A DNA stretch of 64,000 nucleotides from IMG/VR virus record IMGVR_UViG_3300009703_004110, positions 124,001-188,000 of that record. One strand, given 5' to 3'. A model generated the notes under the pieces. That model was not told the origin of the DNA and did not search any database. It saw nothing but the letters and a program-made list of their open reading frames with translations. A program made the position numbers and the translations under genes. Shown here in pieces: positions 9,856 to 45,508 of the stretch (its first letter is position 1; every line of letters starts with the position of its first letter).

Positions 9856-12800
9856 TTATCCGAAAGATGATACGCCTACTTCAATGTCAATGAAGACGTA
9901 GTTTATTGGGTAAGCAGGCTGGAATCTTACAAACACATTCCATTGTCTTGGGTCGACCTTGTCTCTTTCTACTCTTACATTACTAAAATTAGTAATTAGT
10001 CCTTGAGAAAGTAACGCGGACATAAGTGCGATTACTCTAGAGGTTAATACCGCTTGAGTATTTTCATCTTCGACCGTACCGATGAATGGCTTCATTCCAG
10101 CTCTAAGAGCCTTCTTTGCAGCATCTCGGATGAACATAACTGAAATTTCTTCGTCCTCTACGAATCCAGACTGACTAGTAGTTCTTCCGGCAAGAACTCG
10201 GCCTCCACCAATTACCGGCTGCAGAACAGTTGCTCCAACATTTCCAAGAGAATTAAGGGTTATTTGCTTCAGCCTCTTATCTCTTAAGATTGAGAATCCC
10301 TGAAGAACCTTGTTAGTAAGTGGAAGTGCAACATTCTGATGACCAGAGAACCATCCGCCGGCACAAGCCGCTAGGTAGAATCCGTCAATGAATACATTCG
10401 TTCCATTAATATTTCTTACAATTTGGTCAGGCCAGAAGTACATTGAACGCTTACTTGTGAAGTTATCGCTTAGTTTAAAGTTAACAAGGTCCTCGACATT
10501 GCCATCCAAAACTTCTTCTGGATCATCGCCCTGAATTCCTTCAAGAACTCCAATGTCTTCGACAGCAACTTCTTCTGTTCCAATCAGCGCTGCTGGAGTA
10601 ACACCCTGCTGAGCGCCGAAGAAAGCATAGCGCTCCTTCTGAATAGCGATGGTACTCATATTTTCAGCGTGTGTCACAGCCGCTCTAAAGATACCGCTTC
10701 TGTTCTGAAGAGGCAGAGGAACTACAATTTCGCAGTCCGCAGCCTCAAGCGCCTCATAGGCGTTGAACCAATTAGTATCGAAGAAGTCTGCGTCTAGCTG
10801 ATCGATATAAGAAATCTTGATACCGTCACCTTCTTGTAAAGTTCCGTTATCAACCAAGTCTTTATGTAGAAGTAGTGCAGCTCTTACATCTGTAGTGTTA
10901 GATTCGTCTTTAACAAAATATTGTACATCAAATCCATTACCAGTCATTGCGGTTAAGGATCCGTCGTTAGACACTACCACTACTGTACTATCGTCAGTTA
11001 CTGAAGAGATTACCAATTCAACACCAGGAGTTGTAGACCCGAAGAGTTGAGTACTAATGTCATTATCTGTAGTAGAAATAGTTCCAGAAGAATTTTCTAG
11101 ACTTTGAACAACGATAATCCTACCTACGTCATCTGCATCAAAGTCAACTTCTGCAGTAGTGAAGGTACTGTCGGTAGCATTTAGCTCGCCGTTAAAACCT
11201 TGTCCTGTAATTTCGAAGTTAGTATTGATAATGGTGTAGGAGAATGATGTGTCGCTACTTGATATAAAAGCAGTTTGGCCAACAGCGTTCTCATACTGAG
11301 AGTTGTAGAAAGCTGTCTTGTTAGGGAAGATTTGAGTCTCTACCTCGTCTCTAACTACAAAGATATTAACTTGTGTATCTCCATCAGGCTTCGCTGCCTT
11401 AAGTCCTTCTCTTGGAATAGGAATGATGAACAATAGATCATCAACTTCGCAATCATCAGCATTTCCACCGCAAGCTGTAAACCCGCCATCACCGTTGCTA
11501 TCTACTTCTTCTAGTAGAGTTACAGTGGTTCTTGCAGAAATTGGGGGCTTAGCCTGTAGTGCAAGAACGCCCGGGGCGCCATTCTCAAAGACTAACTGAG
11601 AGCCTAGAGATAGAGTATTTGTTAAGCTTGGAGCACCATGCTTATCAAAAAGAGATGCTGCAGAGGTAAAGAACTCTGGATCGTCAATATCAATTAAGTC
11701 GATATATCTGATCTTAAGCTCGTCGCCTACATCAAGAACTCTAGACTTAACATCTATGAAGAACTTGTCTCCAACTTCAAATGGCACTGCGCCCTCTTGA
11801 ATTCCGAAAAGTAGGATTCCGTTACTCTCTAATAGATGCCAGGTAAGTCCAATTTCGGCTAGGCCGTCACTGTTATCATCCTGCAATCCTGCTGGGAAAG
11901 CTACTGTAGCGTCACCAAGCTTCTGAACTCTCAACCTTCTGGTCGAAGTTACCGCTGTAATTTCGTATTTACCAGTGCTATCTCCGCTGCAAATCATCAA
12001 GACCTTACCAACGTCTCCTCCGGTGAAGCTACCTTCTCCGGATGGGGCGCCAGTTAGACCATTGTGACTGACAGTTGGGTCATCGATGAATAAATCAGTT
12101 GCTCTAATGTCCCATGAGAAGTCATCAGCACCAGCGTCAAGGCTGTCACTTATTAAGGTAATGGTTGTTTTTGTAGTGTCTGAATCGTATGCAAGCTCTG
12201 TAATTTCAATGCCAACATAACCGTCTACACATAAGAAGTCACCAGGTACAACCTGTCCTTGATCGACCAAGTCTCCGTCAATTGAGAATTGATCAGTTGT
12301 ATCTTTTGTAGAGTCTCCAACCTTACGAACTGCATTTCCTACTCCGAAATCTGCATCAGAAGCTACAATAAAGCCGTCTGTACACTCATCATCGTTACCG
12401 GAAACTGCTCCATTGGAGCTTGTTAGATAAGCGCTATGAAAGATAATTGGCTGATTTGCTGCATCGCGAACCTGTCCAGATGATGATCCGGTCAAGGTAA
12501 ACGTAGCTTTGCCAGGAACAGGATCTCCATTGGAATCTCTAATGACACCAATGCATCTCACAGTCCATCTTTCTGCTGGTGCGGAATCGTCAATCACAGA
12601 TATGGTATCAAAGAGGCCGCATGTAGTGTCAATGATTGTTCCTGTACCAACGTTCAAAGAACTGGCAGAGTACTTCTTTCCGTCTTGATCTCCGACACTT
12701 GCGCCCTGAAGCTCTAAGCATCCTGTGGTTGTATCTAATCGATAATCGAACTGACCATCAAAGCTATTTGCATCGATGTTGTCTTCTGTACCAAATAGTA

Positions 12801-13077
12801 AGTTCTCGTTAACGTAAACTTCCGTACGTCCGCTTACGATTGATGTAGCCTTTGTATCAAAGAAGCGTCCGCCAGCAACATCTGTAGGGCTGCAGTCATC
12901 GTCACCATCTGCGCCACCACCTACAGCGGATGCGATTAAAGTGCGCTCCTTAAGACCCTCACCAATCACACAGACAATACGGGTACCGCCAGGAATAGAC
13001 ACACCCTGAGAGATAACTCTATCTCTTGCGAATACTCCTGGCTGAACGTAGCCTGAAATTCCTGGGATATTAGCCAT
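9856..13077 (-). CDS. Contractile tail sheath protein with large insertion domains (1073 aa)
   Basis: N-terminal YVQPGVFAR. C-terminal sheath signatures DGFYLAACAGG, LPLTNK, EEISVMFIRD, VFVRFQPAYPINYVFIDI. Confidence 0.9.
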   Translation of the reverse strand: MANIPGISGYVQPGVFARDRVISQGVSIPGGTRIVCVIGEGLKERTLIASAVGGGADGDDDCSPTDVAGGRFFDTKATSIVSGRTEVYVNENLLFGTEDNIDANSFDGQFDYRLDTTTGCLELQGASVGDQDGKKYSASSLNVGTGTIIDTTCGLFDTISVIDDSAPAERWTVRCIGVIRDSNGDPVPGKATFTLTGSSSGQVRDAANQPIIFHSAYLTSSNGAVSGNDDECTDGFIVASDADFGVGNAVRKVGDSTKDTTDQFSIDGDLVDQGQVVPGDFLCVDGYVGIEITELAYDSDTTKTTITLISDSLDAGADDFSWDIRATDLFIDDPTVSHNGLTGAPSGEGSFTGGDVGKVLMICSGDSTGKYEITAVTSTRRLRVQKLGDATVAFPAGLQDDNSDGLAEIGLTWHLLESNGILLFGIQEGAVPFEVGDKFFIDVKSRVLDVGDELKIRYIDLIDIDDPEFFTSAASLFDKHGAPSLTNTLSLGSQLVFENGAPGVLALQAKPPISARTTVTLLEEVDSNGDGGFTACGGNADDCEVDDLLFIIPIPREGLKAAKPDGDTQVNIFVVRDEVETQIFPNKTAFYNSQYENAVGQTAFISSSDTSFSYTIINTNFEITGQGFNGELNATDSTFTTAEVDFDADDVGRIIVVQSLENSSGTISTTDNDISTQLFGSTTPGVELVISSVTDDSTVVVVSNDGSLTAMTGNGFDVQYFVKDESNTTDVRAALLLHKDLVDNGTLQEGDGIKISYIDQLDADFFDTNWFNAYEALEAADCEIVVPLPLQNRSGIFRAAVTHAENMSTIAIQKERYAFFGAQQGVTPAALIGTEEVAVEDIGVLEGIQGDDPEEVLDGNVEDLVNFKLSDNFTSKRSMYFWPDQIVRNINGTNVFIDGFYLAACAGGWFSGHQNVALPLTNKVLQGFSILRDKRLKQITLNSLGNVGATVLQPVIGGGRVLAGRTTSQSGFVEDEEISVMFIRDAAKKALRAGMKPFIGTVEDENTQAVLTSRVIALMSALLSQGLITNFSNVRVERDKVDPRQWNVFVRFQPAYPINYVFIDIEVGVSSFG

Positions 13078-13130
13078 TGATGTTCCTCCAAAGTATAAAT
13101 AAACTCATTTCATTCTCTTATATTAGTAGT

Positions 13131-13943
13131 TTAAGATATATCAGCAATTTCCAAAATATCATCGTATTTTAATGCTATAGCAGTAGACGTAGAACCGAAA
13201 TTTGGTATAGGGGTTAAAACAGAATCAAAGTAGAAAAGCATTTTCTCAATTACATTATCAATAGGTATTTCGACTCTCCACTCGGAATAAGTCGAAATAC
13301 TTATTGTCTGGTTGTATACATAGTCATTAGCATATGCCTCGGCATTTTCGCCACCAATTGATAGGCTTTGAATAAACAATCCATTGGCTCGCAGTTCATT
13401 CCATGCTACATATTGAAGCATCATGGTGACTGTGTCGACTAACTCTTCCAGCTCAGACTGGCTTTCAGAGTAGATATTAATTTCAAAATTCATGCTCCAC
13501 GCACCAGCATAAACACGATGAGAGGGAGTTAGTGTCTCTGATATTAAACCAAAGGAACTCTCCTCCACATCTTTTCTATATTTGTATGTAGCATTTTGAT
13601 TAAAAGATATCGGCTTATATTGTCCGCCGGCATTTTTAATCACGATGGCTGGATAGAACTTAACTTCATATCTGAATATATCACTGATTAAGATCTTTGT
13701 AGTTTCTTCTGAATCTATTTCTATTCCAGTAAGGTCTCTAGTTTTAGGAAAACCATATTCGTCCATTCTATATGTAAAGATATTGTCACGAGCGAAATGT
13801 TTTCTAAGTGTGTCAATTAAAAGATTTTTTGGCTGAACGATACAAACTTGCTGAATGATCGCATTATCATCATAAAAGTTAGAATAAACTCTATGGTCAC
13901 CATTAAATCCTGTTCCAGGGGTCGCTTGGCTATCAATAGGCAT
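13131..13943 (-). CDS. Tail completion/terminator-like protein
   Basis: Upstream of the sheath gene. Motifs FYPAIVIK and FEINIYSESQSELEELVD. Confidence 0.55.
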   Translation of the reverse strand: MPIDSQATPGTGFNGDHRVYSNFYDDNAIIQQVCIVQPKNLLIDTLRKHFARDNIFTYRMDEYGFPKTRDLTGIEIDSEETTKILISDIFRYEVKFYPAIVIKNAGGQYKPISFNQNATYKYRKDVEESSFGLISETLTPSHRVYAGAWSMNFEINIYSESQSELEELVDTVTMMLQYVAWNELRANGLFIQSLSIGGENAEAYANDYVYNQTISISTYSEWRVEIPIDNVIEKMLFYFDSVLTPIPNFGSTSTAIALKYDDILEIADIS

Positions 13944-14242
13944 TATAATAATCCATTATTTTTATGTTCTATAATATGACATTCATGACATAAAGTAATT
14001 CCATTATCAAGATTAAACATAAGATCTCTGTGCTTAGGCTTTGATAGAATATAATGCGCATGTAGCTCATTCCTTAAATGAGTAACGTTACACTTTTGAC
14101 AAATATAGTTATCTCGCTCCCTCACTTCTTTAGACCACTTTGATAATTTATAAGAATTCTTATAAACAGGATTAGATATACCACAATCTTTACATATCTT
14201 TTCCATACTTGCGCCCGGTAGATTTTGTACATCTATTCCCAT
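13943..14242 (-). CDS. Small HNH endonuclease, possibly inactive
   Basis: WSKEVRERDNYICQKC...LHAHYI...NLDNGITLCHECH. The usual AHH reads AHY here. Confidence 0.75.
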   Translation of the reverse strand: MGIDVQNLPGASMEKICKDCGISNPVYKNSYKLSKWSKEVRERDNYICQKCNVTHLRNELHAHYILSKPKHRDLMFNLDNGITLCHECHIIEHKNNGLL

Positions 14243-14249
14243 AGTTTAG

Positions 14250-14591
14250 TTACCTCATGTGTAAAGGCAGATATATGCTCTCCTCTACTTCTTTTGCCTG
14301 GTTACAAAAGTGTTTTATATTAGTAATATATCGATCAAGTTCCGCTCTATCTTTAAAAGCCTCTTTATTAATAACTACTGTCTTTCTAATTACAAGTTCT
14401 GCAACAATTTCATCAGAAGATACACCGGCCTCTTTACCGGCAATTATTTCAATACAATGATTATCAGACAAAACCTTAGTATCTTTTAAATTAAGTTCTT
14501 TACATATATATTCTGAAATATTATTAATCGTTTTATCAAACTCAGAAGTTCTTTCATCTTTTTCTTGGTGTATTTTAACAGCTAACATCAT
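14250..14591 (-). CDS. Hypothetical protein
   Basis: 113-aa ORF coupled to the upstream gene by a 4-nt start/stop overlap. Confidence 0.6.
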   Translation of the reverse strand: MMLAVKIHQEKDERTSEFDKTINNISEYICKELNLKDTKVLSDNHCIEIIAGKEAGVSSDEIVAELVIRKTVVINKEAFKDRAELDRYITNIKHFCNQAKEVEESIYLPLHMR

Positions 14592-15094
14592 GTCACCTCA
14601 TATTCTTTTGTTCTTTCATTCAATTCAACCGTGCGGTTAATTGGTTTAAACTTTCTATTACCAAAATGGTGATTATACTCAACCCCGTATTTACCTGGAG
14701 GGAGTCTTACGCTCCAGTGTCCATCGTTATTGGAAACCTTTTCTTTAATAACTTCACCAGTTTCATTATAAACAGTAATATTAACACCTTTTATTGGTGA
14801 ATTGTTTTTACTAAAAATATATCCAAATAATTTAATATCACCAATAACTAACCCTTTATTTCGTGCAGGCACCAGAGATGGCCCTGGAGCAGATGCCGAT
14901 GGTGTCTTTGCTACTGCTGCCGCTGATGGTCTGGTGCTAACCCCTCCCTCTATTTTTTTTGACAACTTAGAAACTTTATTATTCAGATTTTTAATATTAC
15001 TATCAATCACAACTAAATACTTTTCAATAGTTTCAAGTCTTTCTGAGATAGCGAAGATTTCATCTATCGCTGACTTTGCTTTCTCTTCTGACAT
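14588..15094 (-). CDS. Coiled-coil protein with C-terminal carboxypeptidase-regulatory/SdrD-B-like beta-sandwich
   Basis: N-terminal heptads and an A/P/S linker, then GYIFSKNNSPIKGVNITVY...SNNDGHWSVRLPPGKYGV. Confidence 0.6.
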   Translation of the reverse strand: MSEEKAKSAIDEIFAISERLETIEKYLVVIDSNIKNLNNKVSKLSKKIEGGVSTRPSAAAVAKTPSASAPGPSLVPARNKGLVIGDIKLFGYIFSKNNSPIKGVNITVYNETGEVIKEKVSNNDGHWSVRLPPGKYGVEYNHHFGNRKFKPINRTVELNERTKEYEVT

Positions 15095-28853: not shown

Positions 28854-29312
28854 TTACTTTTTACGATGAGCGGCACACAAAGTGCCCTTTTTCGGAGCTT
28901 GACGTTTACATCGCTGACCATTAGTCTTTACAAATAAACATCTTTTAAACTCAGGAGGCGCCTTAACCTCTTCATAATCTTCCATTACAACCGGATTAAA
29001 CTTTGGTTCAGACTCTTCCTCCATCACTATAAATCCATGAGATTCGTCCTTTTTCTCTGTAATGTTTGTAACATCACCTGAGGTAGTAGTACCATAAATT
29101 GCGGCGCGCCTCTCCTGCTCGTTGGAGGCCTCTAACTCATCTAAATCTTTTTGAAACTCAAAGAAGCTTTCATACGCCACATCATATTCATCTGCATCAT
29201 CTGGAACATGGTGCTCTCCACGTCGTCCAATATCATGAGGAGATGGGGCTTTACGAATTGGCGTACCTTTAATTAGATGACTTCTTTTCTTCAGCTTGCT
29301 CTTTAGCATCAT
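28854..29312 (-). CDS. Hypothetical protein with C-terminal C3H Zn-finger
   Basis: RCLFVKTNGQRCKRQAPKKGTLCAAH. Start moved to 29312, which follows a GAGGAGG RBS. Confidence 0.6.
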   Translation of the reverse strand: MMLKSKLKKRSHLIKGTPIRKAPSPHDIGRRGEHHVPDDADEYDVAYESFFEFQKDLDELEASNEQERRAAIYGTTTSGDVTNITEKKDESHGFIVMEEESEPKFNPVVMEDYEEVKAPPEFKRCLFVKTNGQRCKRQAPKKGTLCAAHRKK

Positions 29313-29922
29313 CTTCCTCCTCAAAATACCTTGACAGAATCTCTTCTAAGGCGTCATGGATCTCATCCTCTAAATCCTCTGCCTCTTCTTTGTCTAGCTC
29401 TAGATCGAATGGCAGGTTTACCCTTGCGCCGACTTCATTATCCTTTATGAAGATATTAAAATGAGGGTCCGGAGTTTTGCACTCAGTATCTTCGTCATTA
29501 GTAGTGTGAAGAACTTCCTTCATCTGTTCGGCCATGTCATGAACCCTGTCAGATGCGTCGGGAAGCTCTAAAAGTTTAAGAGCAATCGCGAGTTTGGTAA
29601 GGTCACTAAAGAGAGAAGACTTCTTTTTCTTCTTCTTCTTCTTCTTTTTATCTTTCCACTTGACCTTCTTTTCCCACTTCTTAACTTTCTTTTTTGTTTC
29701 CTCTTTGTCAGTGGAAACGTGAGATTCTTCTAGATTTTTGTTTTGGTTCAATACGCCCCATGCCTTTGCATAAGCTCTCGCATCGCTTTCGCCAGCATCC
29801 TTAGCGCCCTCAAAGACAGCCATAAATTGGCGGTACTCTTTGGCGCCAGCACCTGGATGACGCTTCTTGACTTTCTTTTTAATATCAGCAGGAACTGATT
29901 TTTTCTTTGCCGTAATCAGCAT
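29269..29922 (-). CDS. ChaB-like protein with poly-Lys tract and acidic C-terminus
   Basis: VPADIKKKV...RQFMAVFEGAKDAGESDARAYAKAWGVL matches the ChaB pattern. A run of ten Lys follows. Confidence 0.6.
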   Translation of the reverse strand: MLITAKKKSVPADIKKKVKKRHPGAGAKEYRQFMAVFEGAKDAGESDARAYAKAWGVLNQNKNLEESHVSTDKEETKKKVKKWEKKVKWKDKKKKKKKKKKSSLFSDLTKLAIALKLLELPDASDRVHDMAEQMKEVLHTTNDEDTECKTPDPHFNIFIKDNEVGARVNLPFDLELDKEEAEDLEDEIHDALEEILSRYFEEEDDAKEQAEEKKSSN

Positions 29923-30201: not shown

Positions 30202-30570
30202 TTAGTTGGTTATATTCATCTTCGATATGCCTTTTGGATTCATAACGCCTATGCCAATTTTTTCAGTTACAGACCATGAAAGTCCCGTCCTTGGTAATAA
30301 AGCAGGAAAAGAATCAAAGTTATATACGCACCATTCCTTTAAAACATCTGGAAGATCATCAAATATCTCCTCCAGAGGGCATGGTGTTGATGTGGCAATA
30401 AGCTTTCCATTACGAATACTTTTCTGCTGTTTAATTTTATAACAATTAACTTTATAATCATATATTCCATAGTATACGAATTCAAATTCGCCATTAGAAA
30501 ATTTACCACTACTAACTTCTTTAAAGCCAGCAGCTTTCAATATTCTTTCAAATTCATTACAGTCTTCCAT
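30202..30570 (-). CDS. Array protein with shared motif (DLPDVLKEWCVYNFDSF) and C-terminal extension
   Basis: Variant of the shared motif; TAATG-coupled to the upstream gene. Confidence 0.65.
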   Translation of the reverse strand: MEDCNEFERILKAAGFKEVSSGKFSNGEFEFVYYGIYDYKVNCYKIKQQKSIRNGKLIATSTPCPLEEIFDDLPDVLKEWCVYNFDSFPALLPRTGLSWSVTEKIGIGVMNPKGISKMNITN

Positions 30571-30953
30571 TAGGCAAACCTCAATCTTTCGTATTCTGCT
30601 TTCTCTGTGGCATTAGCACGTTTTGCCTCAGCAGCATTAACAAGTCTTTTACGTTCTCTAGCAAGGTCCTGCATGTTAAATAATGTTGTATCTCTTATTT
30701 CATATACAGTTAATTGGTCATATGCGTGTTCGTTATAACTCTCAGGTAAGTGTCCGGCATATTTGCTATCCCAATACATTTCCTCATAATCGTCATCATT
30801 ATAGTCAAGATCGTTAACAAATAAAAGTTCTTTTTTAATTCTTGCAACAAGCTCCTCCATCGAATCAGCATATTCTGTCCAGGTTTTTACTCCGCAGCCA
30901 ATAGTGTAATCACATCCGCTGCCTTGCTCGGCTATAACTAAAAAGGTCTTCAT
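30570..30953 (-). CDS. Hypothetical protein in the array, no shared motif
   Basis: 127 aa; contains EQGSGCDYTIGCG. Confidence 0.65.
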   Translation of the reverse strand: MKTFLVIAEQGSGCDYTIGCGVKTWTEYADSMEELVARIKKELLFVNDLDYNDDDYEEMYWDSKYAGHLPESYNEHAYDQLTVYEIRDTTLFNMQDLARERKRLVNAAEAKRANATEKAEYERLRFA

Positions 30954-31240
30954 AATCTTATCTCTCCTTTACTTGTAGATACAAACATATCTAGATTACA
31001 TAATACAAATATCGCCTGATCTCTTCCAAGTTCCATTAGAAAATCATCAAGCTCAGTCTCTCCTATATCCTTAGGGTCAAGTCTACGTCGTTTATAAACC
31101 AATAGTTTATACCCATCGCTTACCATTTTTGGAACAAATCGCCACTTAAACTTATCTTTTCCAAGCTCTCGAAACAGCTCATCTTTAAAGCCTTGGCATT
31201 CAAATAAGGTCATTAAATGGCTCCATATCATTATGGTCAA
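30950..31240 (-). CDS. Array protein with shared motif (ELGRDQAIFVLCNLDMF)
   Basis: Motif near the C-terminus; start uncertain. Confidence 0.6.
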   Translation of the reverse strand: MTIMIWSHLMTLFECQGFKDELFRELGKDKFKWRFVPKMVSDGYKLLVYKRRRLDPKDIGETELDDFLMELGRDQAIFVLCNLDMFVSTSKGEIRL

Positions 31241-31448
31241 ACATATCTAAATTATTAATCAAAATATCTTTAATCGAAACTGATAAATAATCATCATTTA
31301 ACATAGCTTCCAATAACATCTTGGTACTATTTGGGCTAGACCAGCATATTATTTGAACCTTGCTACCTATTTGCCCCATAAACATTTTTCGTCTAGCCAG
31401 GTAATCGTCTAATCCAAGCTTATTCATTTCTGATATTATTTTCATCAA
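31200..31448 (-). CDS. Array protein with shared motif (YLSVSIKDILINNLDMF)
   Basis: Motif near the C-terminus. Confidence 0.6.
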   Translation of the reverse strand: MMKIISEMNKLGLDDYLARRKMFMGQIGSKVQIICWSSPNSTKMLLEAMLNDDYLSVSIKDILINNLDMFDHNDMEPFNDLI

Positions 31449-31816
31449 AATAACTCCGCATTATAAATAATAAAGTCTTGCAACTCTATGGGTAAATCAT
31501 CAATAATCTGGTCAGTGCTTTGATAAATATAGTTACTATCTTTTGGATTCCATCTTGAAAATACGATTGTTTCATCTCTGTGCATAGAGACGCGCAACTC
31601 TTTTTTAAGCTCTGAGTCAGATACATCCAAACGAAAATCTTCAAAGTACTGAAGAGATTTAAAACCGCTTGATATAACTAAGGACCTAAATCTTGCAAAT
31701 TTATCAAACGGCAGTTTATAGCCATTAGAAATAATTAGATTAAGACTAACATAGTCGAGTCTAAAACCTAAGTCTATAGTGCACAAGGAATTATTTAATC
31801 CTCTAATTTTCTTCAT
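31445..31816 (-). CDS. Array protein with shared motif (DLPIELQDFIIYNAELF)
   Basis: Motif at the extreme C-terminus. Confidence 0.7.
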   Translation of the reverse strand: MKKIRGLNNSLCTIDLGFRLDYVSLNLIISNGYKLPFDKFARFRSLVISSGFKSLQYFEDFRLDVSDSELKKELRVSMHRDETIVFSRWNPKDSNYIYQSTDQIIDDLPIELQDFIIYNAELF

Positions 31817-32039
31817 AAATCTCGCGCTCTAATACATCGTTAATTAAAAGCTCAAGAGGACGCCTTATATACTCAGGCGGCTGTATTCTGGGCGATTGAT
31901 CGCTAGCCCGTATAAATTGGGTCTTACGCATAGAATCTAAACGACATTGCTTAGAGCAGTATGCTAGAGAGCACTCAGTCTTTTTTATATATATAAATGC
32001 TTTGCAGCAATGGGTACACATGGTTTTATGGGTTTTCAT
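31803..32039 (-). CDS. Small Zn-finger protein in the array, no shared motif
   Basis: CTHC...YCSKQC. Confidence 0.6.
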   Translation of the reverse strand: MKTHKTMCTHCCKAFIYIKKTECSLAYCSKQCRLDSMRKTQFIRASDQSPRIQPPEYIRRPLELLINDVLEREIYEEN

Positions 32040-32239
32040 ATAAACAGCTCCATATTGTGAATCATATAATTTTGAAACCTTTTTGGTATTCCAGGAAATT
32101 CCAGAATCTTTTCAGCAGAGATCGGATTAAATACATCCGAAATTAAAGACACAAAAATAATCTTTTTTTTGCCATCGACTCTCGCCATTGATATAAAATT
32201 TAGACTCAGCCATTCCGAAAATTCTTCTTCAATATTCAT
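32036..32239 (-). CDS. Array protein with shared motif (GIPKRFQNYMIHNMELFI)
   Basis: Motif at the C-terminus; ATGA overlaps on both sides. Confidence 0.7.
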   Translation of the reverse strand: MNIEEEFSEWLSLNFISMARVDGKKKIIFVSLISDVFNPISAEKILEFPGIPKRFQNYMIHNMELFI

Positions 32240-32532
32240 ATAAATAACCCTATATTATGAATGATGAGATCTTGAACATCAGGCGGAAACTCATTCATAT
32301 GTTCTGACACCTTTCTTAACTCATAATTAAGATAACCATCTATATTATTAGGATCTCTAATTTTATCTATTGATTCGTATACATATAATTTTTCCATACG
32401 AACAGAATAAACGATGCGCATTCTTAAGCCATCATTAAAAAATGCATGATTATGTCGATAGGTCTTTTGTACAAATCCTATCGAATTTAATATTCTTATT
32501 ATAGACGGAGGCACGGCATTTCCATAATTCAT
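32236..32532 (-). CDS. Array protein with shared motif (EFPPDVQDLIIHNIGLFI)
   Basis: Motif at the C-terminus; ATGA overlaps on both sides. Confidence 0.7.
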   Translation of the reverse strand: MNYGNAVPPSIIRILNSIGFVQKTYRHNHAFFNDGLRMRIVYSVRMEKLYVYESIDKIRDPNNIDGYLNYELRKVSEHMNEFPPDVQDLIIHNIGLFI

Positions 32533-32834
32533 ATAAATAACTCCGCATTATAAATCACAAACTCTTGGACCTCTTCTGGCAAAAAAGCAAATAGGTCTCC
32601 GACGCTTTTACCCGGATAAGATTTCACAAATCCGCTACAATCAAGCTTTCCAAATGTAAGCTTAACATGATCGCCGCGCTCACGGAAAGATATTCTAATC
32701 TCCTTTTTAAAGGTATAGTCGTATCTGCTTCCAGAACGTGAACTTATTTCAAATCCTGAGCACATCATGACGCTGTGAAATTCATAAGCGGGAATAGTGG
32801 CGAGAATGTATTCTCCCGGGTATCTTCCTTTCAT
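32529..32834 (-). CDS. Array protein with shared motif (FLPEEVQEFVIYNAELFI)
   Basis: Motif at the C-terminus; ATGA overlaps. Confidence 0.7.
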   Translation of the reverse strand: MKGRYPGEYILATIPAYEFHSVMMCSGFEISSRSGSRYDYTFKKEIRISFRERGDHVKLTFGKLDCSGFVKSYPGKSVGDLFAFLPEEVQEFVIYNAELFI

Positions 32835-33081
32835 ATAAGTAAATCCATATTATGAATCAAAGCATCCTTTACATATTGTGGGAAACGATTGCTTTCAAGG
32901 GCCTCTGATATATATCCCAAGTATAAACATATCTATATCCCGCCTCATCATCGCGACGCTCCTGTATATAGGTGCTTATAAAAAAATCGTCTACATCATT
33001 GCGACCACTATATATGACCATATTATTTTCTTTTAGATATTCACTTATTTCTGGTATATCGATATAATCTCTGACACTCAT
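32831..33081 (-). pseudogene. Frameshifted array gene; motif RFPQYVKDALIHNMDLLI lies in the shifted frame
   Basis: Removing one AT from (AT)4 at 32908-32915 gives ...WDISEALESNRFPQYVKDALIHNMDLLI*, whose stop overlaps the next ATG (ATGA). Confidence 0.7.
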
Positions 33082-33159
33082 AAATTCCGCCTGCCTATCT
33101 AGGCTTTTCTATACAGTACCTGCGCGAACGATGGTGTGCAAATCTAGGAATGGAAAGAT

Positions 33160-33414
33160 TTACACAAACAGTTCCAAATTATGGATAATATAATCCTGGA
33201 TGGTTAACTCAAGATCGTTTAGTTTATCACCTATATCATAAAGAATATACTCCATTCTATCATTGTTCCAGATCCCATAATACCATTTTTTATAAGGATG
33301 ATTGCTCCAGTAATCACATATAATTTTTTCATCGCCATAACAATAGCATCCCTTTTGTCTGGATACAAAACCGCGCTTCTCTAGAAGATCGAAGAATTCA
33401 TTATATTCAATCAT
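33160..33414 (-). CDS. Array protein with shared motif (DLELTIQDYIIHNLELFV)
   Basis: Motif at the C-terminus. Confidence 0.7.
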   Translation of the reverse strand: MIEYNEFFDLLEKRGFVSRQKGCYCYGDEKIICDYWSNHPYKKWYYGIWNNDRMEYILYDIGDKLNDLELTIQDYIIHNLELFV

Positions 33415-33650
33415 ACAAACAACTCCATATTATATATGATATAATCTTTAACTTCTATAGGAAATTGATTAGAATTTAATACATAAGTTATAGAATGCCA
33501 CTCAATATGTTTTCCAGGCCTTTTAATCCCAATAGAATATTTACCATCTTCATCTGCAAAGCTGCTAGTTGCCAAACTACAGTCATACTGTCCAATGAAA
33601 TGACTTATAATTGCATAATAATTATTTGTATTATCATCAGGTATTGACAT
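33411..33650 (-). CDS. Array protein with shared motif (QFPIEVKDYIIYNMELFV)
   Basis: Motif at the C-terminus. Confidence 0.7.
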   Translation of the reverse strand: MSIPDDNTNNYYAIISHFIGQYDCSLATSSFADEDGKYSIGIKRPGKHIEWHSITYVLNSNQFPIEVKDYIIYNMELFV

Positions 33651-33839
33651 TTATTGGCCCTTTATTCTAATAAATAGATCCAAGTTATAAATAATAAAGC
33701 TGCGCGCAGGATCCGGAAGGTCTTCGCATTCTAAGAGTGCTTCGGCAGACCACCAGACTTTCTCGCAATCATCACTCTAAGTAACGTACTCCCATAAGTC
33801 CATATATCCATACACTTCTGTTAACTTTGGTTTATTCAT
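33651..33839 (-). pseudogene. Array gene with in-frame TAG at codon 21 (motif DLPDPARSFIIYNLDLFI)
   Basis: Reads MNKPKLTEVYGYMDLWEYVT*SDDCEKVWWSAEALLECEDLPDPARSFIIYNLDLFIRIKGQ*. TAATG-coupled to the HNH gene. Confidence 0.65.
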
Positions 33840-34708
33840 TACCAGTTATCCTTATTGGCGAGCATTTTTTCTAAATGAGACTTGAGAAAGCAGGCATCGT
33901 GAGCCATCTTTACTCTATTACATACTTCACAACAAGATACTACATTGTCAAGGCTATAGCCTTTGCTAGAGTCAACTCTGTCCACCCCAAGAGTTTCTAT
34001 CTTGTCCCCGCAATAATTACAAGGCTTCTGCCAAAAAGTAGAAAACTGTTCGTCAGTTAGATTCCAAGCAAATCCTCTTTTCTTTGCATTAAACTTATAT
34101 TTAGATAGCTTACCTGCGAGAGTGGCGTTATGTATTTTAGCATAGGCACGCTCCTGCTTTCTGGCTTTTTCTAGATTTTCACTTCGCCACTTATTCTTTG
34201 CAACTCTTCTCTTTTCGCGATATACCTCATCATCTTTATATTTTTCCTTGTGCCATTTGGCCTTGCAGGGTTTGCAAACTACTCCAAATCCATCATCCCT
34301 TGACTTATCCTTATAAAAGTCATCAACTGATAACGTTAGCTTACAATGCGAGCATCGTTTTTCTATTTTATCTGAAAATATACCACTTGCTGCATTTTTC
34401 TTTCTCTTTTTAATACGACAAAGTTTGCACACATTCTCCCTACCATCCGCAAGAAGCTTTGATTTATTAAAGCTATCCATAGGTAATAATTCCGAACAAG
34501 CTTTGCAGGTCTTTTCTATTCTATCTATATCATATTTAATTCTTGGAACCGGCACTCTTTTGGCATTTTTTACTTTACTAGTACAGGTTCTGCACCTATT
34601 AGAATATCCATCTTTAGTTGCCTTATTTAAACTATATGCCTCATATGGCATAGGATCTTTACAGTAGTTACAAGTCTTCATCCCTCCTCCATACATATAT
34701 TTTACCAT
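33839..34708 (-). CDS. HNH-type homing endonuclease-like protein with three N-terminal CxxC Zn-finger repeats
   Basis: KTCNYC...CRTC, KTCKAC...CKLC, KRCSHC...CKPC, then PCNYCG...GVDRVDSSKGYSLDNVVSCCEVCNRVK. The start may be 34681. Confidence 0.75.
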   Translation of the reverse strand: MVKYMYGGGMKTCNYCKDPMPYEAYSLNKATKDGYSNRCRTCTSKVKNAKRVPVPRIKYDIDRIEKTCKACSELLPMDSFNKSKLLADGRENVCKLCRIKKRKKNAASGIFSDKIEKRCSHCKLTLSVDDFYKDKSRDDGFGVVCKPCKAKWHKEKYKDDEVYREKRRVAKNKWRSENLEKARKQERAYAKIHNATLAGKLSKYKFNAKKRGFAWNLTDEQFSTFWQKPCNYCGDKIETLGVDRVDSSKGYSLDNVVSCCEVCNRVKMAHDACFLKSHLEKMLANKDNW

Positions 34709-34866: not shown

Positions 34867-35880
34867 TTAGTCAGTGACAAAGCCACTGCCGACACCTCGG
34901 GGGTTTACAATCCCAATTCCGATTATTTCGCTGACTACCCAGCCAAGCTTCAACTGCTTAGGCTCGTCAGCAGGCAGTACCTCGATGTCCTGACGGACAG
35001 GCATTACACCTACGAACTCTGGATCCGCTACTGCGAAGACCTGCTTGTTAGTAACAACCTTGGAGACGATGATATCAGCACCGAAGATTGAACCATAAAG
35101 TCCAGTCTGTAGTAGTTCACGCTGAGTCACAGGATCGACCTGAGACGCACCACCGGCACCAGCAGACTCCCAATTAAGGATGTCAGTGAATTCATTGATG
35201 TGCATGAAGTACTTAGCAGTCACGAGGTCCCAACGATCGACCTGACGCTTTAGGTTTAGAAGACCGACCTTAGCCAGTTCATCAGTGGTAGTACCGTTGT
35301 CCAATGTCTGCAACTGGTTCTCACCACCTGCGTTGTTGTCACCGGCGAAATCAAGAGCGGCGAATACGTTAGCATCCTCCTGCGCCTGGATTTCCTGACG
35401 GGCCTTTTGCTGAGCACGATCGATTACATTGAATCTACGCCTCTTGACTTCAGCAATACGGACGGTTGGGTTTGAAACTACTTCAAACTCTGGGATGGTT
35501 ACTCTGTCACCGAAGACACGGGACTCAGGCGCGGTACCATTGCTAGATATAACAACAGCTCCTACGTCGATATCACGGTCGTAGACAGGTAGAGCACCTT
35601 GTGGAAGTGGATCGACTACGAGAGCCTTTCTACCTACACCTTGGTAATCAAGGTTCCTACGAATAGGATTAGCCATAGCTTGACCGAGGGCAGTCTTACC
35701 TTCTTGAGTCATAAGAGCCTGCTTGATCATTTCGTCTCTCTGCTCTTCATTTAATGAAGAACCCTGAGATAGAGCTGAGCTAGAAGGTGCCAATTCTTCA
35801 ATGATGGAAGCGTATCTAACAATCTGCGCTAGAGCATCTTTTACGTTGCCGGCGTTTAATTCGCCTTGTGTATTAAACAT
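34867..35880 (-). CDS. Major capsid protein (HK97 fold, compact encapsulin-like type)
   Basis: PIRRNLDYQGVGRKALVVDPLP, FEVVSNPTVRIAEV, AQEDANVF, GLYGSIFGADIIVS, IGIGIVNPRGV. Follows scaffold and decoration genes and ends at a strong terminator. Confidence 0.85.
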   Translation of the reverse strand: MFNTQGELNAGNVKDALAQIVRYASIIEELAPSSSALSQGSSLNEEQRDEMIKQALMTQEGKTALGQAMANPIRRNLDYQGVGRKALVVDPLPQGALPVYDRDIDVGAVVISSNGTAPESRVFGDRVTIPEFEVVSNPTVRIAEVKRRRFNVIDRAQQKARQEIQAQEDANVFAALDFAGDNNAGGENQLQTLDNGTTTDELAKVGLLNLKRQVDRWDLVTAKYFMHINEFTDILNWESAGAGGASQVDPVTQRELLQTGLYGSIFGADIIVSKVVTNKQVFAVADPEFVGVMPVRQDIEVLPADEPKQLKLGWVVSEIIGIGIVNPRGVGSGFVTD

Positions 35881-39673: not shown

Positions 39674-40556
39674 TCATTTATTTTCCCTTCTAACTCTTTT
39701 AATTACATTTCTGCTAACAGAGAAGCGTTGGGCTAGTGCTTTGCCGCTTAACGTATATGACATAATCAAATCTATTTGTTCTTTAGTAAATTCAATTCTA
39801 TTGACAAGCTTTACGCCCCTTAAGAGCTGCCGATATCTTAGCCTTTGTTTCTTCAGGAAGAGGGACGCCCTTGTTGTGAGCGATTCTATCAGGAGCGGTG
39901 AGTGCGCCATGCTTTCTTAATCTCTGTTCATGCATATCACAATAACGTATTCCATTAACTTTGAATCCATCGGTTCTTTCGCATCCTGGTGCGTTGCAAA
40001 CTTTGGAGCCATAGTTTTTATCAAATGTTATTTTCCTTTTATCCAGCTCATCTTGAGTTGGCTGGTAACCTTTTTTGTAATTACCAGCATGAAGATTTTC
40101 TTTGTGATGTTCTGATATTTTTCTTTTATGTTCTTCAGAAAGTTTTCTGCCTCGATTAGCTTCGTGAGCTTTTTTTATACTTTCAAGAGTATGGTGCTTG
40201 TGCCAATCTTCGGACATCTTCTTCTTTGTTTCTTCGGAGTGTTTCCAGCCCCCACGAGTATTCCCGCCGGGCCTTAGATTGTATCCAAACTTTTTATCTT
40301 GAGACTTATATTGTCTTATTACCCTTGCCTCTGCTAAGTCGCAATCATTTTTAAAAATATGCTCCTCAAGGATTTCGAAAGTAAAGTTTTTAACTCCATG
40401 TTTATTTATCGCATGATGAACATACTGATTGGTCTTTTTATTCTTAGCCAAATATCTATGCCTATACCATCTAGCCATGGGATCTGCACTCTGACCTATG
40501 TAGACTTTTTTATTCAGAATATTTGTTATTTTATATATGTAGTATTTTTTGGACAT
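39674..40556 (-). CDS. GIY-YIG homing endonuclease with NUMOD3 repeats; C-terminal HTH-like tail split off by a probable 1-nt frameshift near 39807
   Basis: YYIYKITNILNKKVYIGQS, GYNL and NUMOD3-type HSEETKKKMS / LSEEHKRKIS / LPEETKAKIS. The tail continues in the overlapping 78-aa ORF. Confidence 0.8.
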
Positions 40557-42010: not shown

Positions 42011-45000
42011 TTAGTTGAATAAGTCAGAAAGACTTTCGACCATAGTTTTTCTAGGAGTATCCTCTGGGGTTTCGTAACCAACGTTTAGCCCACCAAGATC
42101 ACTGGCTACCTTAACGGTGTCAGGGACTCTGGCGTTTGCTACTGAGCGCTTGAATGCTTCAAATGCCTTTTCGTCAAACTCTAGAACTAAATCTACTTGA
42201 CTATCAAGAGCTGCTCTGGTAGGAGGTATTAGTTGCTTGCGCTGCATATCCATCGCAAGGTCATAAGCCCTTCTCATCCTTAGCTTAATCTGCTCTCTTT
42301 CGTCTTCAGCTTTCTTCTCCATGAACTTCTGGCCAAGGGCCGCTCTTGGGGAAGGAACCTGTTCGGTTACAAAGGCAGCGTCTTGGACGCCATCGTTAGG
42401 AACGACATCATTCGCGTCGTTTGCGTCTGACTCCTCTCCTTCGTCTCCTTCGTGATGCTTATCTTCATGCTCATCAACTTCTTCTTCAGCTGCTTCCTCT
42501 GCCTTCTCTTCTACGTCTGCTTCGTCTACTGCATTATTTACAGCACCGTCATCAGCCGCTTGACCGGTAGGCTCTTTCTGAGCTACAACTTCTGCATCAT
42601 CAGCAGCGTTTAGTAGTCCATCATCAGCGCACTGTCCGGTAGGAGTCTTCTCTGCCACTTCTCTCGGAGTACCAGTTGGAGCCTTATCGCCAGGAACTGC
42701 CTGTACTTGTCCACCAGTTGGCGCTGCTTTCGCTACACCCTCTGCTGCACCTGCACCGTCATCAGCTGCATTGTCATCAACTTCGCTATCATCATCGCCT
42801 TCGCTAGCCTCACCGTCATCAGCGGCCATTTCTGCAGCAGCAGGAGCGGCTTCTTGAGCAAGCTTCTTACGAGCCTCCTCTACCATAGCTGCCCTTCGAG
42901 CCTTTCTCATCTCTAGTGCCTTGGCATATAGTTCTGAATCAGTTGCTTCAGTTGCGGATGCGGTGCTCTGTTCAGGAACTTCCTCTACATACTCAGAAGT
43001 CTTAACTAAAGACTTAGCCATTACGCTGGCCATTCTTAGTAAGGTACGTGCCTCACCAGATAGCTGGGCTGAATCACTTAGAGCGTCAGCAGCGAGACCC
43101 TTTAGTTCTGCCATTTTCTTAGCAGGAATCTTCTTTCTGTGCTCGAATGCTTCAGAGATCAAGGCTAGTTCATCAGCAGATTCACTAGACTCGGCCATAA
43201 CGACCTTCATATCTCTTAGAAGTCTCTTAGATAGAGCTACTTGTTCTGCATCGCCTTCACCAGGAGTAACGTTGATTTCTACATCACCGCCACCACCAAG
43301 TTCGTCTACGGCAGTTCTAAGTGCAGATACGGCTTCTTCCATATCTACTAGCGCACTGTCTACTCTTGACTTCGGATCGCCTTCTTCTTCTGCGAGTGGC
43401 TCTTCATCAAGTGGAGCCTCTTCGCCCAACGGAGCTTCCTCACCAAGTGGGGCCTCTTCGCCGAGAGCCTCTGGAGCTGCTACATCGCCAAGATCGCCAA
43501 GCGGAGATTCTTGAGCTACGCGAGTTAGCTTAGCAGCAATTGCCGGCAAACCTTCTTCACGAATAGCTGCGACAACAGCCTTACCGTATTCACGGCTGCT
43601 TAGGAATTCCCAATTTTCTTCTAGCTTAGGACCATAGATGTCCTTAGCAGTTGTTGCCAAGACGAGGTGGCCATCAGCATATACTTCGAAGCAAGAAGCC
43701 GCTTTATTAACGGCACCGTTAAGGGCCCTAACCTGCTTGAACTTAGTGCTTAGCTTAGCTCTCTTTTGCTGTTCTTTTATCTGCATATCGCCAGGGAAAG
43801 TTCCAGTGTCTCCACCCATTGACTTATCCTGGTGCATGTGCTTATCGTCCATCCAGTACTTCTTGTAGTCTTCAGACTTAAAAGTAGATGGCTCAACAGG
43901 CTCAGCGGAACCTTCGCCTGCCGCACCACCGTAGAAGTAGGCTCTCCTCTCCATACGACGTTGTGCAAGCTCAGCTCTCTTTTGCTGCTCTTTTACCTGC
44001 ATATCTCCTGGGAAGGTACCAGAGTCTCCACCCATTGACTTGTCCTGATGCATGTGCTTGTCATCCATCCAGTATTTCTTGTAATCTTCTGAGGTAAAAG
44101 TACTTGGCTCGACAGGCTCAGCGGAACCTTCTCCTGATGCACCACCGTAGAAGTAAGCAATACGACGTCTCAATTCCGCACGCTTTCTTAGATTTGATTC
44201 ACTCATTATTTCTCCCATAATGTTTTTAATTGATTTGTCTCTATCTAGACTGGAAAAAGCATAAGATTCTGGTCCTACACCATCCGTATCGAACGTATCA
44301 GTAAGTTCACCACTGTCACTAGAAACTAATCCTGTGGACTCGCCTCCAGTTCCTCTAACACCTTCACTATCATATGTTTCAAGAGAAGGTGCTCCTTCAG
44401 CAGATTGACCGCTTGTAAATACCTCTCCTTCAGCTGTACTCATTTCATTCTCATACGCTTTACCAAAACTAGTATATAGCGTTTGAATATCTCTATCTGT
44501 TGCGCCGGCGTCCCTTAGCTGGGACAGAGCCTTTGCAAACTGAACCTCTTTAGCTGCTTCCGGACTAAGGGCTGCATCTTGAGCGTTCTTTATAAATCCC
44601 TTCTTTTCTAGATAGCCGCCAATTAATGACGCCCTCTTATCGATCGTGCAACCTTGCGGCCCACATGCGACCTTTAATAGCTGGTCCAACTCTTCAGCAT
44701 TCTTTAACGTTAGATTCGATACGAACTCGTTATAATCAGAAATGCCGTGGCTGACCAGTTCCGCCTTGTGATCGCCAATAGACGCCAAGCACTGAAGTAA
44801 TCTAGCCCCAGGTTCTGCAGGCTGAACTACGAGGCTATACTCAATTGGCTGTAAGCCAATGTTGATTTCGCCATATGCAGAACGTGCTGTTACACACTTG
44901 CAATACTGAGTTGGAGTGCTGGCTCTGTTTCCGCAGTCACTACAAATAGAAGTAGAAACCGCAGTTCCCATAGAACCATATCGAACAACCCCCGTCTCAA

Positions 45001-45508
45001 CCTTTCTAGCTAAGTTAGGGTAATTTACTTTATCTAATGCGCAAAGACCTACCGCCTGCTTGTGCTTCTCATCGTAATAAACGTCAAGAATAATACCCCT
45101 GATTCCGTCAACAGATTCAGATTTGTGGTCTACACAAAGTGGCATTCCAATCCAATCTCGGGCGGCCTTCTTTAGTTCTGATTCCGGGAAGATGTCGCCA
45201 TTGTTATTCTTGTGAGGTTGAACATTACCGTGCCACTTAAATTGGTCATCAAAATAACCCCAAGCACGGTCACTGCCAACCTTCCTCAAATTACCTTCGT
45301 CATCAACCAGGGAAGCTTCAGCTGCTCTTAAAAATATGATTGTAAAATATAAAAAATCGTCTGATTTAGGAGCCAGAACTTGTGAGGTTCTAGCAAACTT
45401 TCCAAGCCTTTTCAAAATAACAGGAGACGCGGTAACCGTATCAGCATCGACTTCTTGCACCACATTGCTATTGGAATATCCAAATTTTTTAATATCTAGT
45501 CCAGGCAT
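42011..45508 (-). CDS. Prohead protease-scaffold fusion (1165 aa)
   Basis: N-terminal NNNGDIFPESELKKA..WIGMPLCVDH...SMGT...CSDCG...IEYSLVVQPAEP is an HK97/herpes-type protease pattern. The C-terminus is acidic and coiled-coil. Confidence 0.8.
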   Translation of the reverse strand: MPGLDIKKFGYSNSNVVQEVDADTVTASPVILKRLGKFARTSQVLAPKSDDFLYFTIIFLRAAEASLVDDEGNLRKVGSDRAWGYFDDQFKWHGNVQPHKNNNGDIFPESELKKAARDWIGMPLCVDHKSESVDGIRGIILDVYYDEKHKQAVGLCALDKVNYPNLARKVETGVVRYGSMGTAVSTSICSDCGNRASTPTQYCKCVTARSAYGEINIGLQPIEYSLVVQPAEPGARLLQCLASIGDHKAELVSHGISDYNEFVSNLTLKNAEELDQLLKVACGPQGCTIDKRASLIGGYLEKKGFIKNAQDAALSPEAAKEVQFAKALSQLRDAGATDRDIQTLYTSFGKAYENEMSTAEGEVFTSGQSAEGAPSLETYDSEGVRGTGGESTGLVSSDSGELTDTFDTDGVGPESYAFSSLDRDKSIKNIMGEIMSESNLRKRAELRRRIAYFYGGASGEGSAEPVEPSTFTSEDYKKYWMDDKHMHQDKSMGGDSGTFPGDMQVKEQQKRAELAQRRMERRAYFYGGAAGEGSAEPVEPSTFKSEDYKKYWMDDKHMHQDKSMGGDTGTFPGDMQIKEQQKRAKLSTKFKQVRALNGAVNKAASCFEVYADGHLVLATTAKDIYGPKLEENWEFLSSREYGKAVVAAIREEGLPAIAAKLTRVAQESPLGDLGDVAAPEALGEEAPLGEEAPLGEEAPLDEEPLAEEEGDPKSRVDSALVDMEEAVSALRTAVDELGGGGDVEINVTPGEGDAEQVALSKRLLRDMKVVMAESSESADELALISEAFEHRKKIPAKKMAELKGLAADALSDSAQLSGEARTLLRMASVMAKSLVKTSEYVEEVPEQSTASATEATDSELYAKALEMRKARRAAMVEEARKKLAQEAAPAAAEMAADDGEASEGDDDSEVDDNAADDGAGAAEGVAKAAPTGGQVQAVPGDKAPTGTPREVAEKTPTGQCADDGLLNAADDAEVVAQKEPTGQAADDGAVNNAVDEADVEEKAEEAAEEEVDEHEDKHHEGDEGEESDANDANDVVPNDGVQDAAFVTEQVPSPRAALGQKFMEKKAEDEREQIKLRMRRAYDLAMDMQRKQLIPPTRAALDSQVDLVLEFDEKAFEAFKRSVANARVPDTVKVASDLGGLNVGYETPEDTPRKTMVESLSDLFN
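43757..44158 (-). repeat. Two near-identical 186-bp (62-aa) repeats within the scaffold, period 216 bp
   Basis: AYFYGGA.GEGSAEPVEPSTF.SEDYKKYWMDDKHMHQDKSMGGD.GTFPGDMQ.KEQQKRA at 43973-44158 and 43757-43942. Confidence 0.95.

Follow-up and report, generated by a model that had tools for sequence, protein, structure and literature searches.

An undescribed tandem family of small proteins with a conserved C-terminal block behind the capsid gene of a large phage

RESULTS

An array of small genes encodes an undescribed protein family

The 64-kb stretch of DNA analysed here (positions 124,001 to 188,000 of IMG/VR virus record IMGVR_UViG_3300009703_004110; hereafter the window) contains, at 30202-33839, a tandem array of 13 open reading frames (ORFs) which, like every gene of the window, lie on the minus strand. 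Eleven of the 13 are copies, intact or broken, of a gene for a small protein that carries a variant of LPxxxQDFIIYNxELF at or near its C-terminus. We find that these copies belong to a real and undescribed family; fast-turnover tandem families in plastic regions of phage genomes were already known. Read from its genomic context, it may well be a birth-and-death family of host-interaction proteins that combine a constant scaffold with a variable surface. An earlier note on this DNA, made from the letters alone, had not recognised the proteins as a described family, and the databases bear this out: no member has a real match in Pfam, PHROGs or NCBIfam, and profile searches against the PDB returned only E values above 0.5.

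The C-terminal block is conserved and the N-terminal regions are not

The eleven motif peptides listed in the earlier note are exactly the 11 matches that a loose regular expression for the motif core produces in a six-frame translation of the whole window, and all of them fall within 30307-33695. The shared C-terminal motif thus stands, but the conserved unit is longer than the approximately 17 residues first proposed; across 26 members it spans about 26 residues and reads approximately [ST]-h-E-[ED]-h-[FL]-x-x-[LF]-P-x-[ED]-h-[KQ]-[ED]-h-h-I-[YFH]-N-h-[DE]-L-F, where h is a hydrophobic residue. The block is laid out as a short helix ([ST]-h-E-[ED]-h-[FL]), an L-P turn and the motif helix, which ends in I-[YFH]-N-h-[DE]-L-F. 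The Asn (24 of 26 members) and the Phe (25 of 26) are nearly invariant, and the K/Q and D/E positions are also conserved. The motif mostly stops 0-1 residue short of the C-terminus; seven members have 10-34 residues past it.

In profile-profile comparisons of the window copies with foreign copies, the C-terminal block aligns with P=5e-15, whereas for the N-terminal parts P is 0.34, no different from 20 shuffled controls, and pairwise phmmer comparisons of these fronts yielded no significant pair. At the level of sequence, the N-termini are therefore as unrelated as they had looked at first reading. A helix of the form hxxhhxxxG[FYW] is found near the N-terminus in most of nine aligned copies, the copies from two short contigs (L004 and L005) carry a Cys-rich front, PCxCxxC...CP, and many members of both N-terminal types have a Pro-containing loop about 15 residues ahead of the block. 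The proteins of the family are small, at 65-125 aa, and most of them are acidic, with an isoelectric point of 4.5-6.9.

The earlier note had also argued, from codon variation within a preserved frame, that selection operates on the motif at the protein level. Over eight core codons, the proportion of synonymous differences (pS=0.64) is near saturation, as against a proportion of nonsynonymous differences of pN=0.27, and the codons of conserved residues vary freely between copies; since synonymous sites are saturated and the amino acids are kept, selection does act on the protein. In the DNA, the copies appear as a family of direct repeats with 56-nucleotide (nt) units that share 65-80% identity, no higher. 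Some motif ends also carry what looks like a translation signal. The ends of copies 2, 5, 6, 7 and 8 (numbered in the order in which they follow the capsid gene) read G-GAG or G-GGG and are overlapped by the next gene (ATGA or TGATG), the Shine-Dalgarno-like GGAG standing about 8-9 nt ahead of the next start, and these five ends keep Glu or Gly at the acidic position. The sixth overlapping end, that of the frameshifted copy 4, reads G-GAT, and the five ends without an overlap of this kind are likewise devoid of the GGAG signal. The coupling signal adds a DNA-level constraint that may explain the Glu and the preceding Met or Ala; such a constraint cannot account for the nearly invariant Asn and Phe. 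Rfam holds no match for the array, and promoter-like and terminator-like sites occur in it at the level of shuffled sequences.

Structure prediction suggests a single small domain

For copy 5, AlphaFold2 (26-row alignment; predicted local distance difference test, pLDDT, 78.2; predicted template modelling score, pTM, 0.65) predicts a compact beta-alpha-beta4-alpha-alpha arrangement, with a strand at residues 8-12, a helix at 16-25, four strands within 29-64 and helices at 78-82 and 87-96. The conserved block makes up the last two helices of the model (mean pLDDT 88 and 76 over the motif helices). The model of copy 3 (11-row alignment, pLDDT 64) has the same topology, and both models show a helix, a strand meander and two C-terminal helices. 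As modelled for copy 5, the packed helix stops at the Asn, and a coil made up of the last five residues directly follows it, the terminal residue being of low confidence; in the copy 3 model, the helix reaches the end of the chain. A helical-wheel reading of the conservation table finds hydrophobic positions round about 260 degrees of the last helix, which is what a buried helix should show, and a narrow polar stripe formed by the K/Q, D/E and D/E positions. With medium confidence, the block is predicted to be a buried layer of helices within one small domain; it may offer a shared surface as well, and the conserved polar stripe could be a surface for a common partner.

Comparisons with known structures remained at background. 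Foldseek gave E values of at least 0.28 against the PDB, at least 0.015 against AFDB clusters (with a template modelling score, TM, of about 0.5) and at least 0.009 against BFVD; the best VIA-align Z was 6.9, within the background of 7-8 stated for the tool; and the ESM Atlas gave nothing above background, feature searches scoring 0.80 or less. The structural neighbours align to model residues 6-100, approximately, the C-terminal helix included. Among them, KA1-type domains (Chk1, MARK, AMPK, CIPK, METTL16), which resemble the models in their beta-alpha-beta4-alpha order and in having a C-terminal helix on the sheet, recur at Z 5.0-6.3, against a best background Z of 7-8. In the ESM Atlas, the C-terminal region of CIPK reaches a TM of 0.62 and a cluster of HicA, whose fold is the dsRBD-like alpha-beta-beta-beta-alpha, a TM of 0.46/0.51 over 62 residues, both within the background stated for the tool; this holds for the KA1 and the HicA/dsRBD-like scores alike, and they give no sign of common descent. 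A HicA identity, suggested by an 'LEKxGF...G' N-terminus, was considered and rejected. A single member of 16 matches the Pfam HicA_toxin profile (PF07927; E=0.018, below the gathering score), TM values are about 0.5, PDB profile searches gave no match to HicA and no HicA chain is among the PDB structure matches listed. Moreover, HicA has its catalytic histidine in a G-S-H turn after the first helix, and this histidine is absent here, the equivalent being G-S-R in copy 5 and G-C-Y in copy 3, with none in copy 11.

Members are so far found only in uncultivated large phages

A word-indexed search of 5.8 billion proteins found only proteins of the window's own contig (420,521 bp), and when 1.84 billion representatives were searched exhaustively with a profile, the nine proteins of the window and three others came up. 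Leads from these three outside proteins, together with a scan of JGI metagenomes and IMG/VR that used a back-translated pattern first and a hidden Markov model (HMM) of the family next, led to further loci; the search for arrays with varying N-termini beyond the window, which the earlier note had proposed, uncovered additional multi-copy loci. The phage of the window itself is also present in two other assemblies. Related phages of 305-336 kb have a single intact copy of 83 aa (P0010) plus a decayed copy behind their capsid and HNH genes, and another phage has an orthologue of copy 11 (P0012, at L001 54-413). Two short contigs (L004 and L005) hold arrays of 5-7 copies, three loci (L032, L088 and L131) hold pairs, and a TARA scaffold of 224,615 bp (L214) holds at least six diverged copies. 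Outside the window, a copy always has at least one neighbouring copy, decayed ones counted. In total, there are about 35 members in at least six phage lineages, and the family is so far found only in uncultivated large phages: a tblastn search of 50,697 records of cultured phages, tried with two members, detected no relative, and a search of 185,579 species genomes yielded no member either.

Reciprocal best matches link copy 11 to P0012 (77 bits), copy 3 to P0010 and copy 9 to the 64-aa copy of L032, which argues that several paralogues predate the split of these phages. Pseudogenes are found both in the window (two) and in L002, a relative with a 92%-identical capsid protein (one). The family evolves by birth and death, with differential retention and decay of copies.

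The TARA scaffold differs in its setting. Its copies are found among genes for RNA ligases, NUDIX proteins, an ADP-ribosylglycohydrolase, an NAD kinase, an HD domain protein and RNase H, and no capsid gene lies within 20 kb of them. The same locus (L214 1-20417), from a large marine phage, also has an EF-G-like gene with all of the EF-G Pfam domains, and its HD domain is of the RelA/SpoT type.

Nine of the eleven copies are intact

All eleven motif copies had been described as ORFs; the number of copies is right, but only nine are intact genes (67-123 aa), copies 1 and 4 being disrupted. Two observations made at first sight were reproduced, in that 11 of the 12 junctions in the array overlap or abut (mostly as ATGA), in keeping with translational coupling, and the region is AT-rich, with a GC content of 0.34-0.36 at 30-34 kb against about 0.41 elsewhere. 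Starting from the capsid side, copy 1 (33651-33839) is interrupted by a TAG in frame (33777-33779), past which the motif-bearing part is left without a start codon. Copy 2 (33411-33650; 79 aa) is intact and matches the family HMM with E=8e-17, and copy 3 (33160-33414; 84 aa), also intact, is the one whose counterpart is the single intact copy of the related jumbo phages. Copy 4 (32831-33081) is frameshifted, its front (32869-33081) and its motif (32831-32932) lying in different frames; it requires a -1/+2 change of frame between 32872 and 32932, and an (AT)4 run lies within this overlap at 32908-32915. The modelled copy 5 (32529-32834; 101 aa), copy 6 (32236-32532; 98 aa) and the shortest, copy 7 (32036-32239; 67 aa), are intact, the last two being recognised by both the motif expression and the family HMM. 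Copy 8 (31445-31816; 123 aa) has an N-terminal extension, with copy 5 as its closest paralogue; copy 9 (31200-31445; 81 aa) continues for 12 residues beyond the motif; and copy 10 (30950-31213; 87 aa when counted from the ATG of the public gene call) has a degenerate motif followed by 11 residues. All three are intact. Copy 11 (30202-30570; 122 aa) is a chimera that closes the distal end of the island and is described below. The two small ORFs interspersed among the copies are unrelated to them, neither the 78-aa ORF at 31803-32039 nor the 127-aa ORF at 30570-30953 matching the family HMM. The former has zinc-ribbon-like cysteines (CxxC...(F/Y)CSxxC) and weak Pfam and PHROG matches only, the PHROGs being of unknown function.

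Read-through or recoding of the TAG in copy 1 was considered and rejected. TAG is the ordinary stop of 6 of the 40 long ORFs of the window, and no tRNA genes were found in the window; copies 1 and 4 are therefore read as decayed and not as recoded. The region is identical, with zero differences, in an independent Logan assembly of the source run, which is from a subsurface metagenome. No RNA runs containing the region were found.

The array fills a hypervariable island behind the capsid gene

The gene upstream of the array, at 34867-35880, encodes the major capsid protein, as had been assumed (337 aa; PHROG 2522, major head protein, E=2.2e-73). The protein is 92% identical to that of L002 and is 50% identical over 290 residues to gp27 of Bacillus phage G, the nucleotide identity to the latter being 71.5% over about 720 nt. 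On the opposite side, the array is bordered by a block of genes, taken for neck genes in the earlier note, that relatives conserve. About 160 nt past the capsid stop codon begins the first gene of the island, for a homing endonuclease of the HNH/endonuclease VII type (33839-34708; 289 aa; PHROG 1035, E=1.9e-38, in addition to HNH PHROGs), the stop of which overlaps the start of copy 1. In L002 and in L032, too, family copies come after an HNH gene homologous to this one (34% and 46% identity, respectively). Proteins flanking the island are 53-92% identical between the window and L002, whereas the interval between the capsid gene and the gene for a 156-aa protein has entirely different content; in L002 (10262-15054) it holds an HNH gene, a decayed copy, P0010, a gene for an adenylosuccinate-lyase-like protein (Lyase_1 and ADSL_C), one for an M15 peptidase, and others. 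Because L002 also has an HNH gene together with one intact and one decayed copy, the site is an old one of turnover and not that of a recent single insertion; a recent mobile insertion of the island, considered as a candidate, was rejected on the same grounds. The island that the array fills is thus hypervariable and accessory, and its site has long been a hotspot of turnover.

At the far end of the island, the family domain of copy 11 is followed by a tail of about 39 residues (30205-30321) that is homologous to the C-terminus of the capsid protein (BLASTP E=6e-7), the alignment ending at the C-terminus of both proteins. The orthologue P0012 keeps IGIGIINPIGL, as compared to IGIGIVNPRGV in the capsid protein (8 of 11 identical, E=0.004). 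Since this capsid-like block is kept while copy 11 and P0012 are only 41% identical overall, the tail is arguably under selection and not a dead remnant. It is either a displaced end of the capsid gene that has become part of a new protein or a mimic of the capsid end.

Free-standing homing-endonuclease insertions are known to displace the 3' end of the neighbouring gene, as in the case of the fungal mitochondrial atp6 gene in Allomyces. The arrangement found here is similar in that an endonuclease gene stands at the end of a conserved gene and a diverged second 3' end lies downstream. In contrast to those insertions, 4.6 kb of other genes intervene here. Moreover, a family member carries the displaced end as an in-frame fusion, and a second phage conserves it, which again makes a dead remnant improbable.

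Two further systems invite comparison. In Bacillus phage G, a run of small ORFs occupies the same position in a related genome, behind the gp27 capsid gene and gp28, and gp32, gp34, gp35 and gp37 (NC_023719, 25846-28126) form a set of four paralogues with a CPIC...C..C front and a C-terminal helix '..KENDRYL..'. This set was tested as part of the same family and rejected (hhalign P=0.69), and gp28 is unrelated to the HNH gene of the window. The array also recalls the immunity arrays of polymorphic toxins, where diverged small alpha+beta paralogues stand in tandem behind a gene for an HNH-fold nuclease. The nuclease of the window, however, matches homing-endonuclease PHROGs of phages and is free of toxin-delivery parts, arrays of the family also occur with no nuclease gene nearby, and no Pfam immunity family was matched.

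Several other features of the window were recorded. A second homing endonuclease gene, at 39798-40556 (minus strand; PHROG 314, E=2e-39; GIY-YIG type, PHROG 5123), lies within the block of head genes; the matching stretch of L002, from the gene for a 231-aa protein to that for an 885-aa protein, has only a 128-aa ORF in its gene list. The 217-aa protein encoded at 29269-29922 (minus strand) has 11 lysines in a row, for which the DNA uses a long purine stretch resembling a homopolymer; the protein is conserved in L001 (64% identity) and missing from L002. The 1165-aa protein encoded at 42011-45508 (minus strand) resembles a head maturation protease in one domain only, at about residues 100-210 (PHROG 18299, E=3e-11). 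A second AT-rich stretch (13001-15000; GC content 0.33-0.35), downstream of a gene similar to those for tail sheaths (9856-13077), may be an accessory island as well.

DISCUSSION

The explanation that we favour, and that may well be correct, is that the proteins interact with the host and form a family, evolving by birth and death, whose scaffold is constant and whose surface varies. Each copy would form one compact alpha+beta domain of beta-alpha-beta4-alpha-alpha topology, in which LPxxxQDFIIYNxELF and the short helix that precedes it would be a C-terminal pair of helices packed on the sheet. This pair would be the most buried and the slowest-evolving part of the protein, the remainder having diverged past recognition by sequence. 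The island would extend from the homing endonuclease gene at the capsid stop codon to the segment resembling the 3' end of the capsid gene, displaced and fused to the last copy, and would hold paralogues, several of them older than the split of the phages, that are retained differentially or decay. The proteins would serve in host takeover or in counter-defence, each copy recognising a different target through its variable surface, and the constant helical scaffold may also present a shared acidic and aromatic surface. Tandem amplification, rapid divergence outside the scaffold, decay of copies and residence in an accessory island all fit with a family of this kind.

Several observations weigh against this view. 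None of the fold matches is decisive (the best Z of 6.9 compares with a background of 7-8), and the models are of medium confidence, built as they are on an alignment of 26 rows, the N-terminal half of which is uncertain. Homology over the whole length is not demonstrable by sequence, as the comparisons of the fronts show, and the existence of at least two N-terminal types could reflect real swapping of domains ahead of a constant module. In addition, a core helix does not strictly need an invariant Asn and Phe, a polar stripe of conserved residues or a place so near the end of the chain. The earlier note had proposed a variable cargo joined to a constant docking tag and had stated that whole-length paralogy of the ORFs within one known fold, with the motif as a core helix, would speak against it. 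The predictions come close to whole-length paralogues with the motif as a core helix, although neither a known fold nor homology provable by sequence was found. What survives of that proposal is the repeat, the selection on the protein and the hypervariable remainder, whereas the notion of a short, detachable tag is weakened.

It is nevertheless conceivable, if unlikely, that the C-terminal block is a constant docking module which brings unrelated N-terminal cargo to one hub partner, such as the sliding clamp by way of N-x-[DE]-L-F. The contrast between fronts of no detectable similarity and a strongly conserved block, the existence of more than one N-terminal type, the conservation of Asn, Phe, K/Q and D/E and the motif's usual position at the chain's very end are what such a module would show, and the five final residues of copy 5 are modelled beyond the helix. 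On the other hand, the block is about 26 residues long and is predicted to be packed into the domain, the structural neighbours align across the whole model with the last helix included, this helix is hydrophobic round most of its circumference, and seven members continue beyond the motif. As to the clamp, the bacterial beta-clamp-binding pentapeptide has the consensus QL[SD]LF, and x-L-[DE]-L-F near the C-terminus is similar to it. Nevertheless, the first position of the pentapeptide, where the defining Gln is expected, is Asn in 24 of 26 members and Gln in none, and the peptide directly follows a conserved hydrophobic helix, unlike a clamp-binding peptide in a flexible tail. A complex prediction with two Bacillus subtilis DnaN chains and copy 3 scored 0.01, which by the tool's own verdict counts neither way.

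A more specific proposal, which we regard as improbable, is that the constant module docks on the capsid or its scaffold and that the diversified small proteins are packaged for co-injection or decorate the head, in the manner of the internal protein (Ip) system of T4 but with the module at the C-terminus. At least one of the internal proteins, IPI*, is an anti-restriction protein that is injected. T4-like Ip loci resemble the array in that small, otherwise unrelated proteins share one short constant block and are encoded in tandem in plastic regions; this last trait is present here, in the 13-ORF array and in an island that differs from that of a relative with a 92%-identical capsid protein. 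In three related phages, moreover, the capsid gene is directly followed by the copies, which share its strand and are coupled to it via the HNH gene, and both copy 11 and its orthologue keep a tail like the capsid C-terminus. In T4, ipII and ipIII both start with the capsid-targeting sequence MKTYQEFIAE, ORFs with this sequence also occur in tandem (two or three adjacent ORFs on IMG/VR contigs), and one foreign member of the family (L004 435-686, plus strand, 83 aa) starts with its first seven residues, MKTYQEF. The link was considered and rejected, as this one member has the seven residues only and is without the usual h-x-E-[AS] continuation after residue 7, the family motif is absent from all 123 IMG/VR ORFs beginning with MKTYQEF, and the targeting sequence is found in no copy of the window. 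The family HMM detects no sequence similarity to ipII or ipIII. The constant block of T4 comprises 10 N-terminal residues that are cleaved off (PMC8442874), whereas here it lies at the C-terminus, is about 26 residues long and is predicted to belong to the fold; the T4 internal proteins are described as highly basic (PMC8442874), whereas members of this family are mostly acidic. The TARA scaffold, with its six or more copies in an accessory region that has no capsid gene within 20 kb, also argues against a role in the head. We give correspondingly little credence to the wider form of the proposal, in which the pair of helices would be a true docking module that loads effectors onto one phage structure, notably the interior of the procapsid for co-injection, with the tail of copy 11 as a second attachment to the shell.

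We consider it very unlikely that the hydrophobic pair of helices is an interface for homo- or hetero-oligomers through which co-translated paralogues form mixed complexes. More than one face of the last helix is hydrophobic, the translational coupling of neighbouring copies would favour equal dosage, and copies come in groups of two or more when decayed ones are counted; the related phages, however, keep a single intact copy, and packing of the helix between the sheet and the two other helices explains the wide hydrophobic arc equally well. That the repeat is a recombination or regulatory element of the DNA, or that the ORFs are non-functional remnants, is scarcely credible, because, even though a direct-repeat family is detectable in the DNA, Shine-Dalgarno and start signals overlap motif ends and two of the 11 copies are broken, the repeats are no more than 65-80% identical, the amino acids are kept while synonymous sites approach saturation, distant phages keep the motif with different codons, and neither Rfam nor the promoter and terminator predictions single out the array.

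Large phages are rich in small genes to which no function has been assigned, and fast-turnover families in tandem are good candidates for roles in host takeover and counter-defence. One such family is now defined by a profile, about 35 members, a fold predicted with medium confidence and birth-and-death dynamics, and in the lineage of phage G, turnover has a hotspot just behind the capsid gene. A C-terminal block that did act as a docking module would amount to a new protein-targeting signal, one that might help to load large capsids with cargo; if the block is no such module, the family would be a compact example of a constant scaffold that carries a hypervariable surface.

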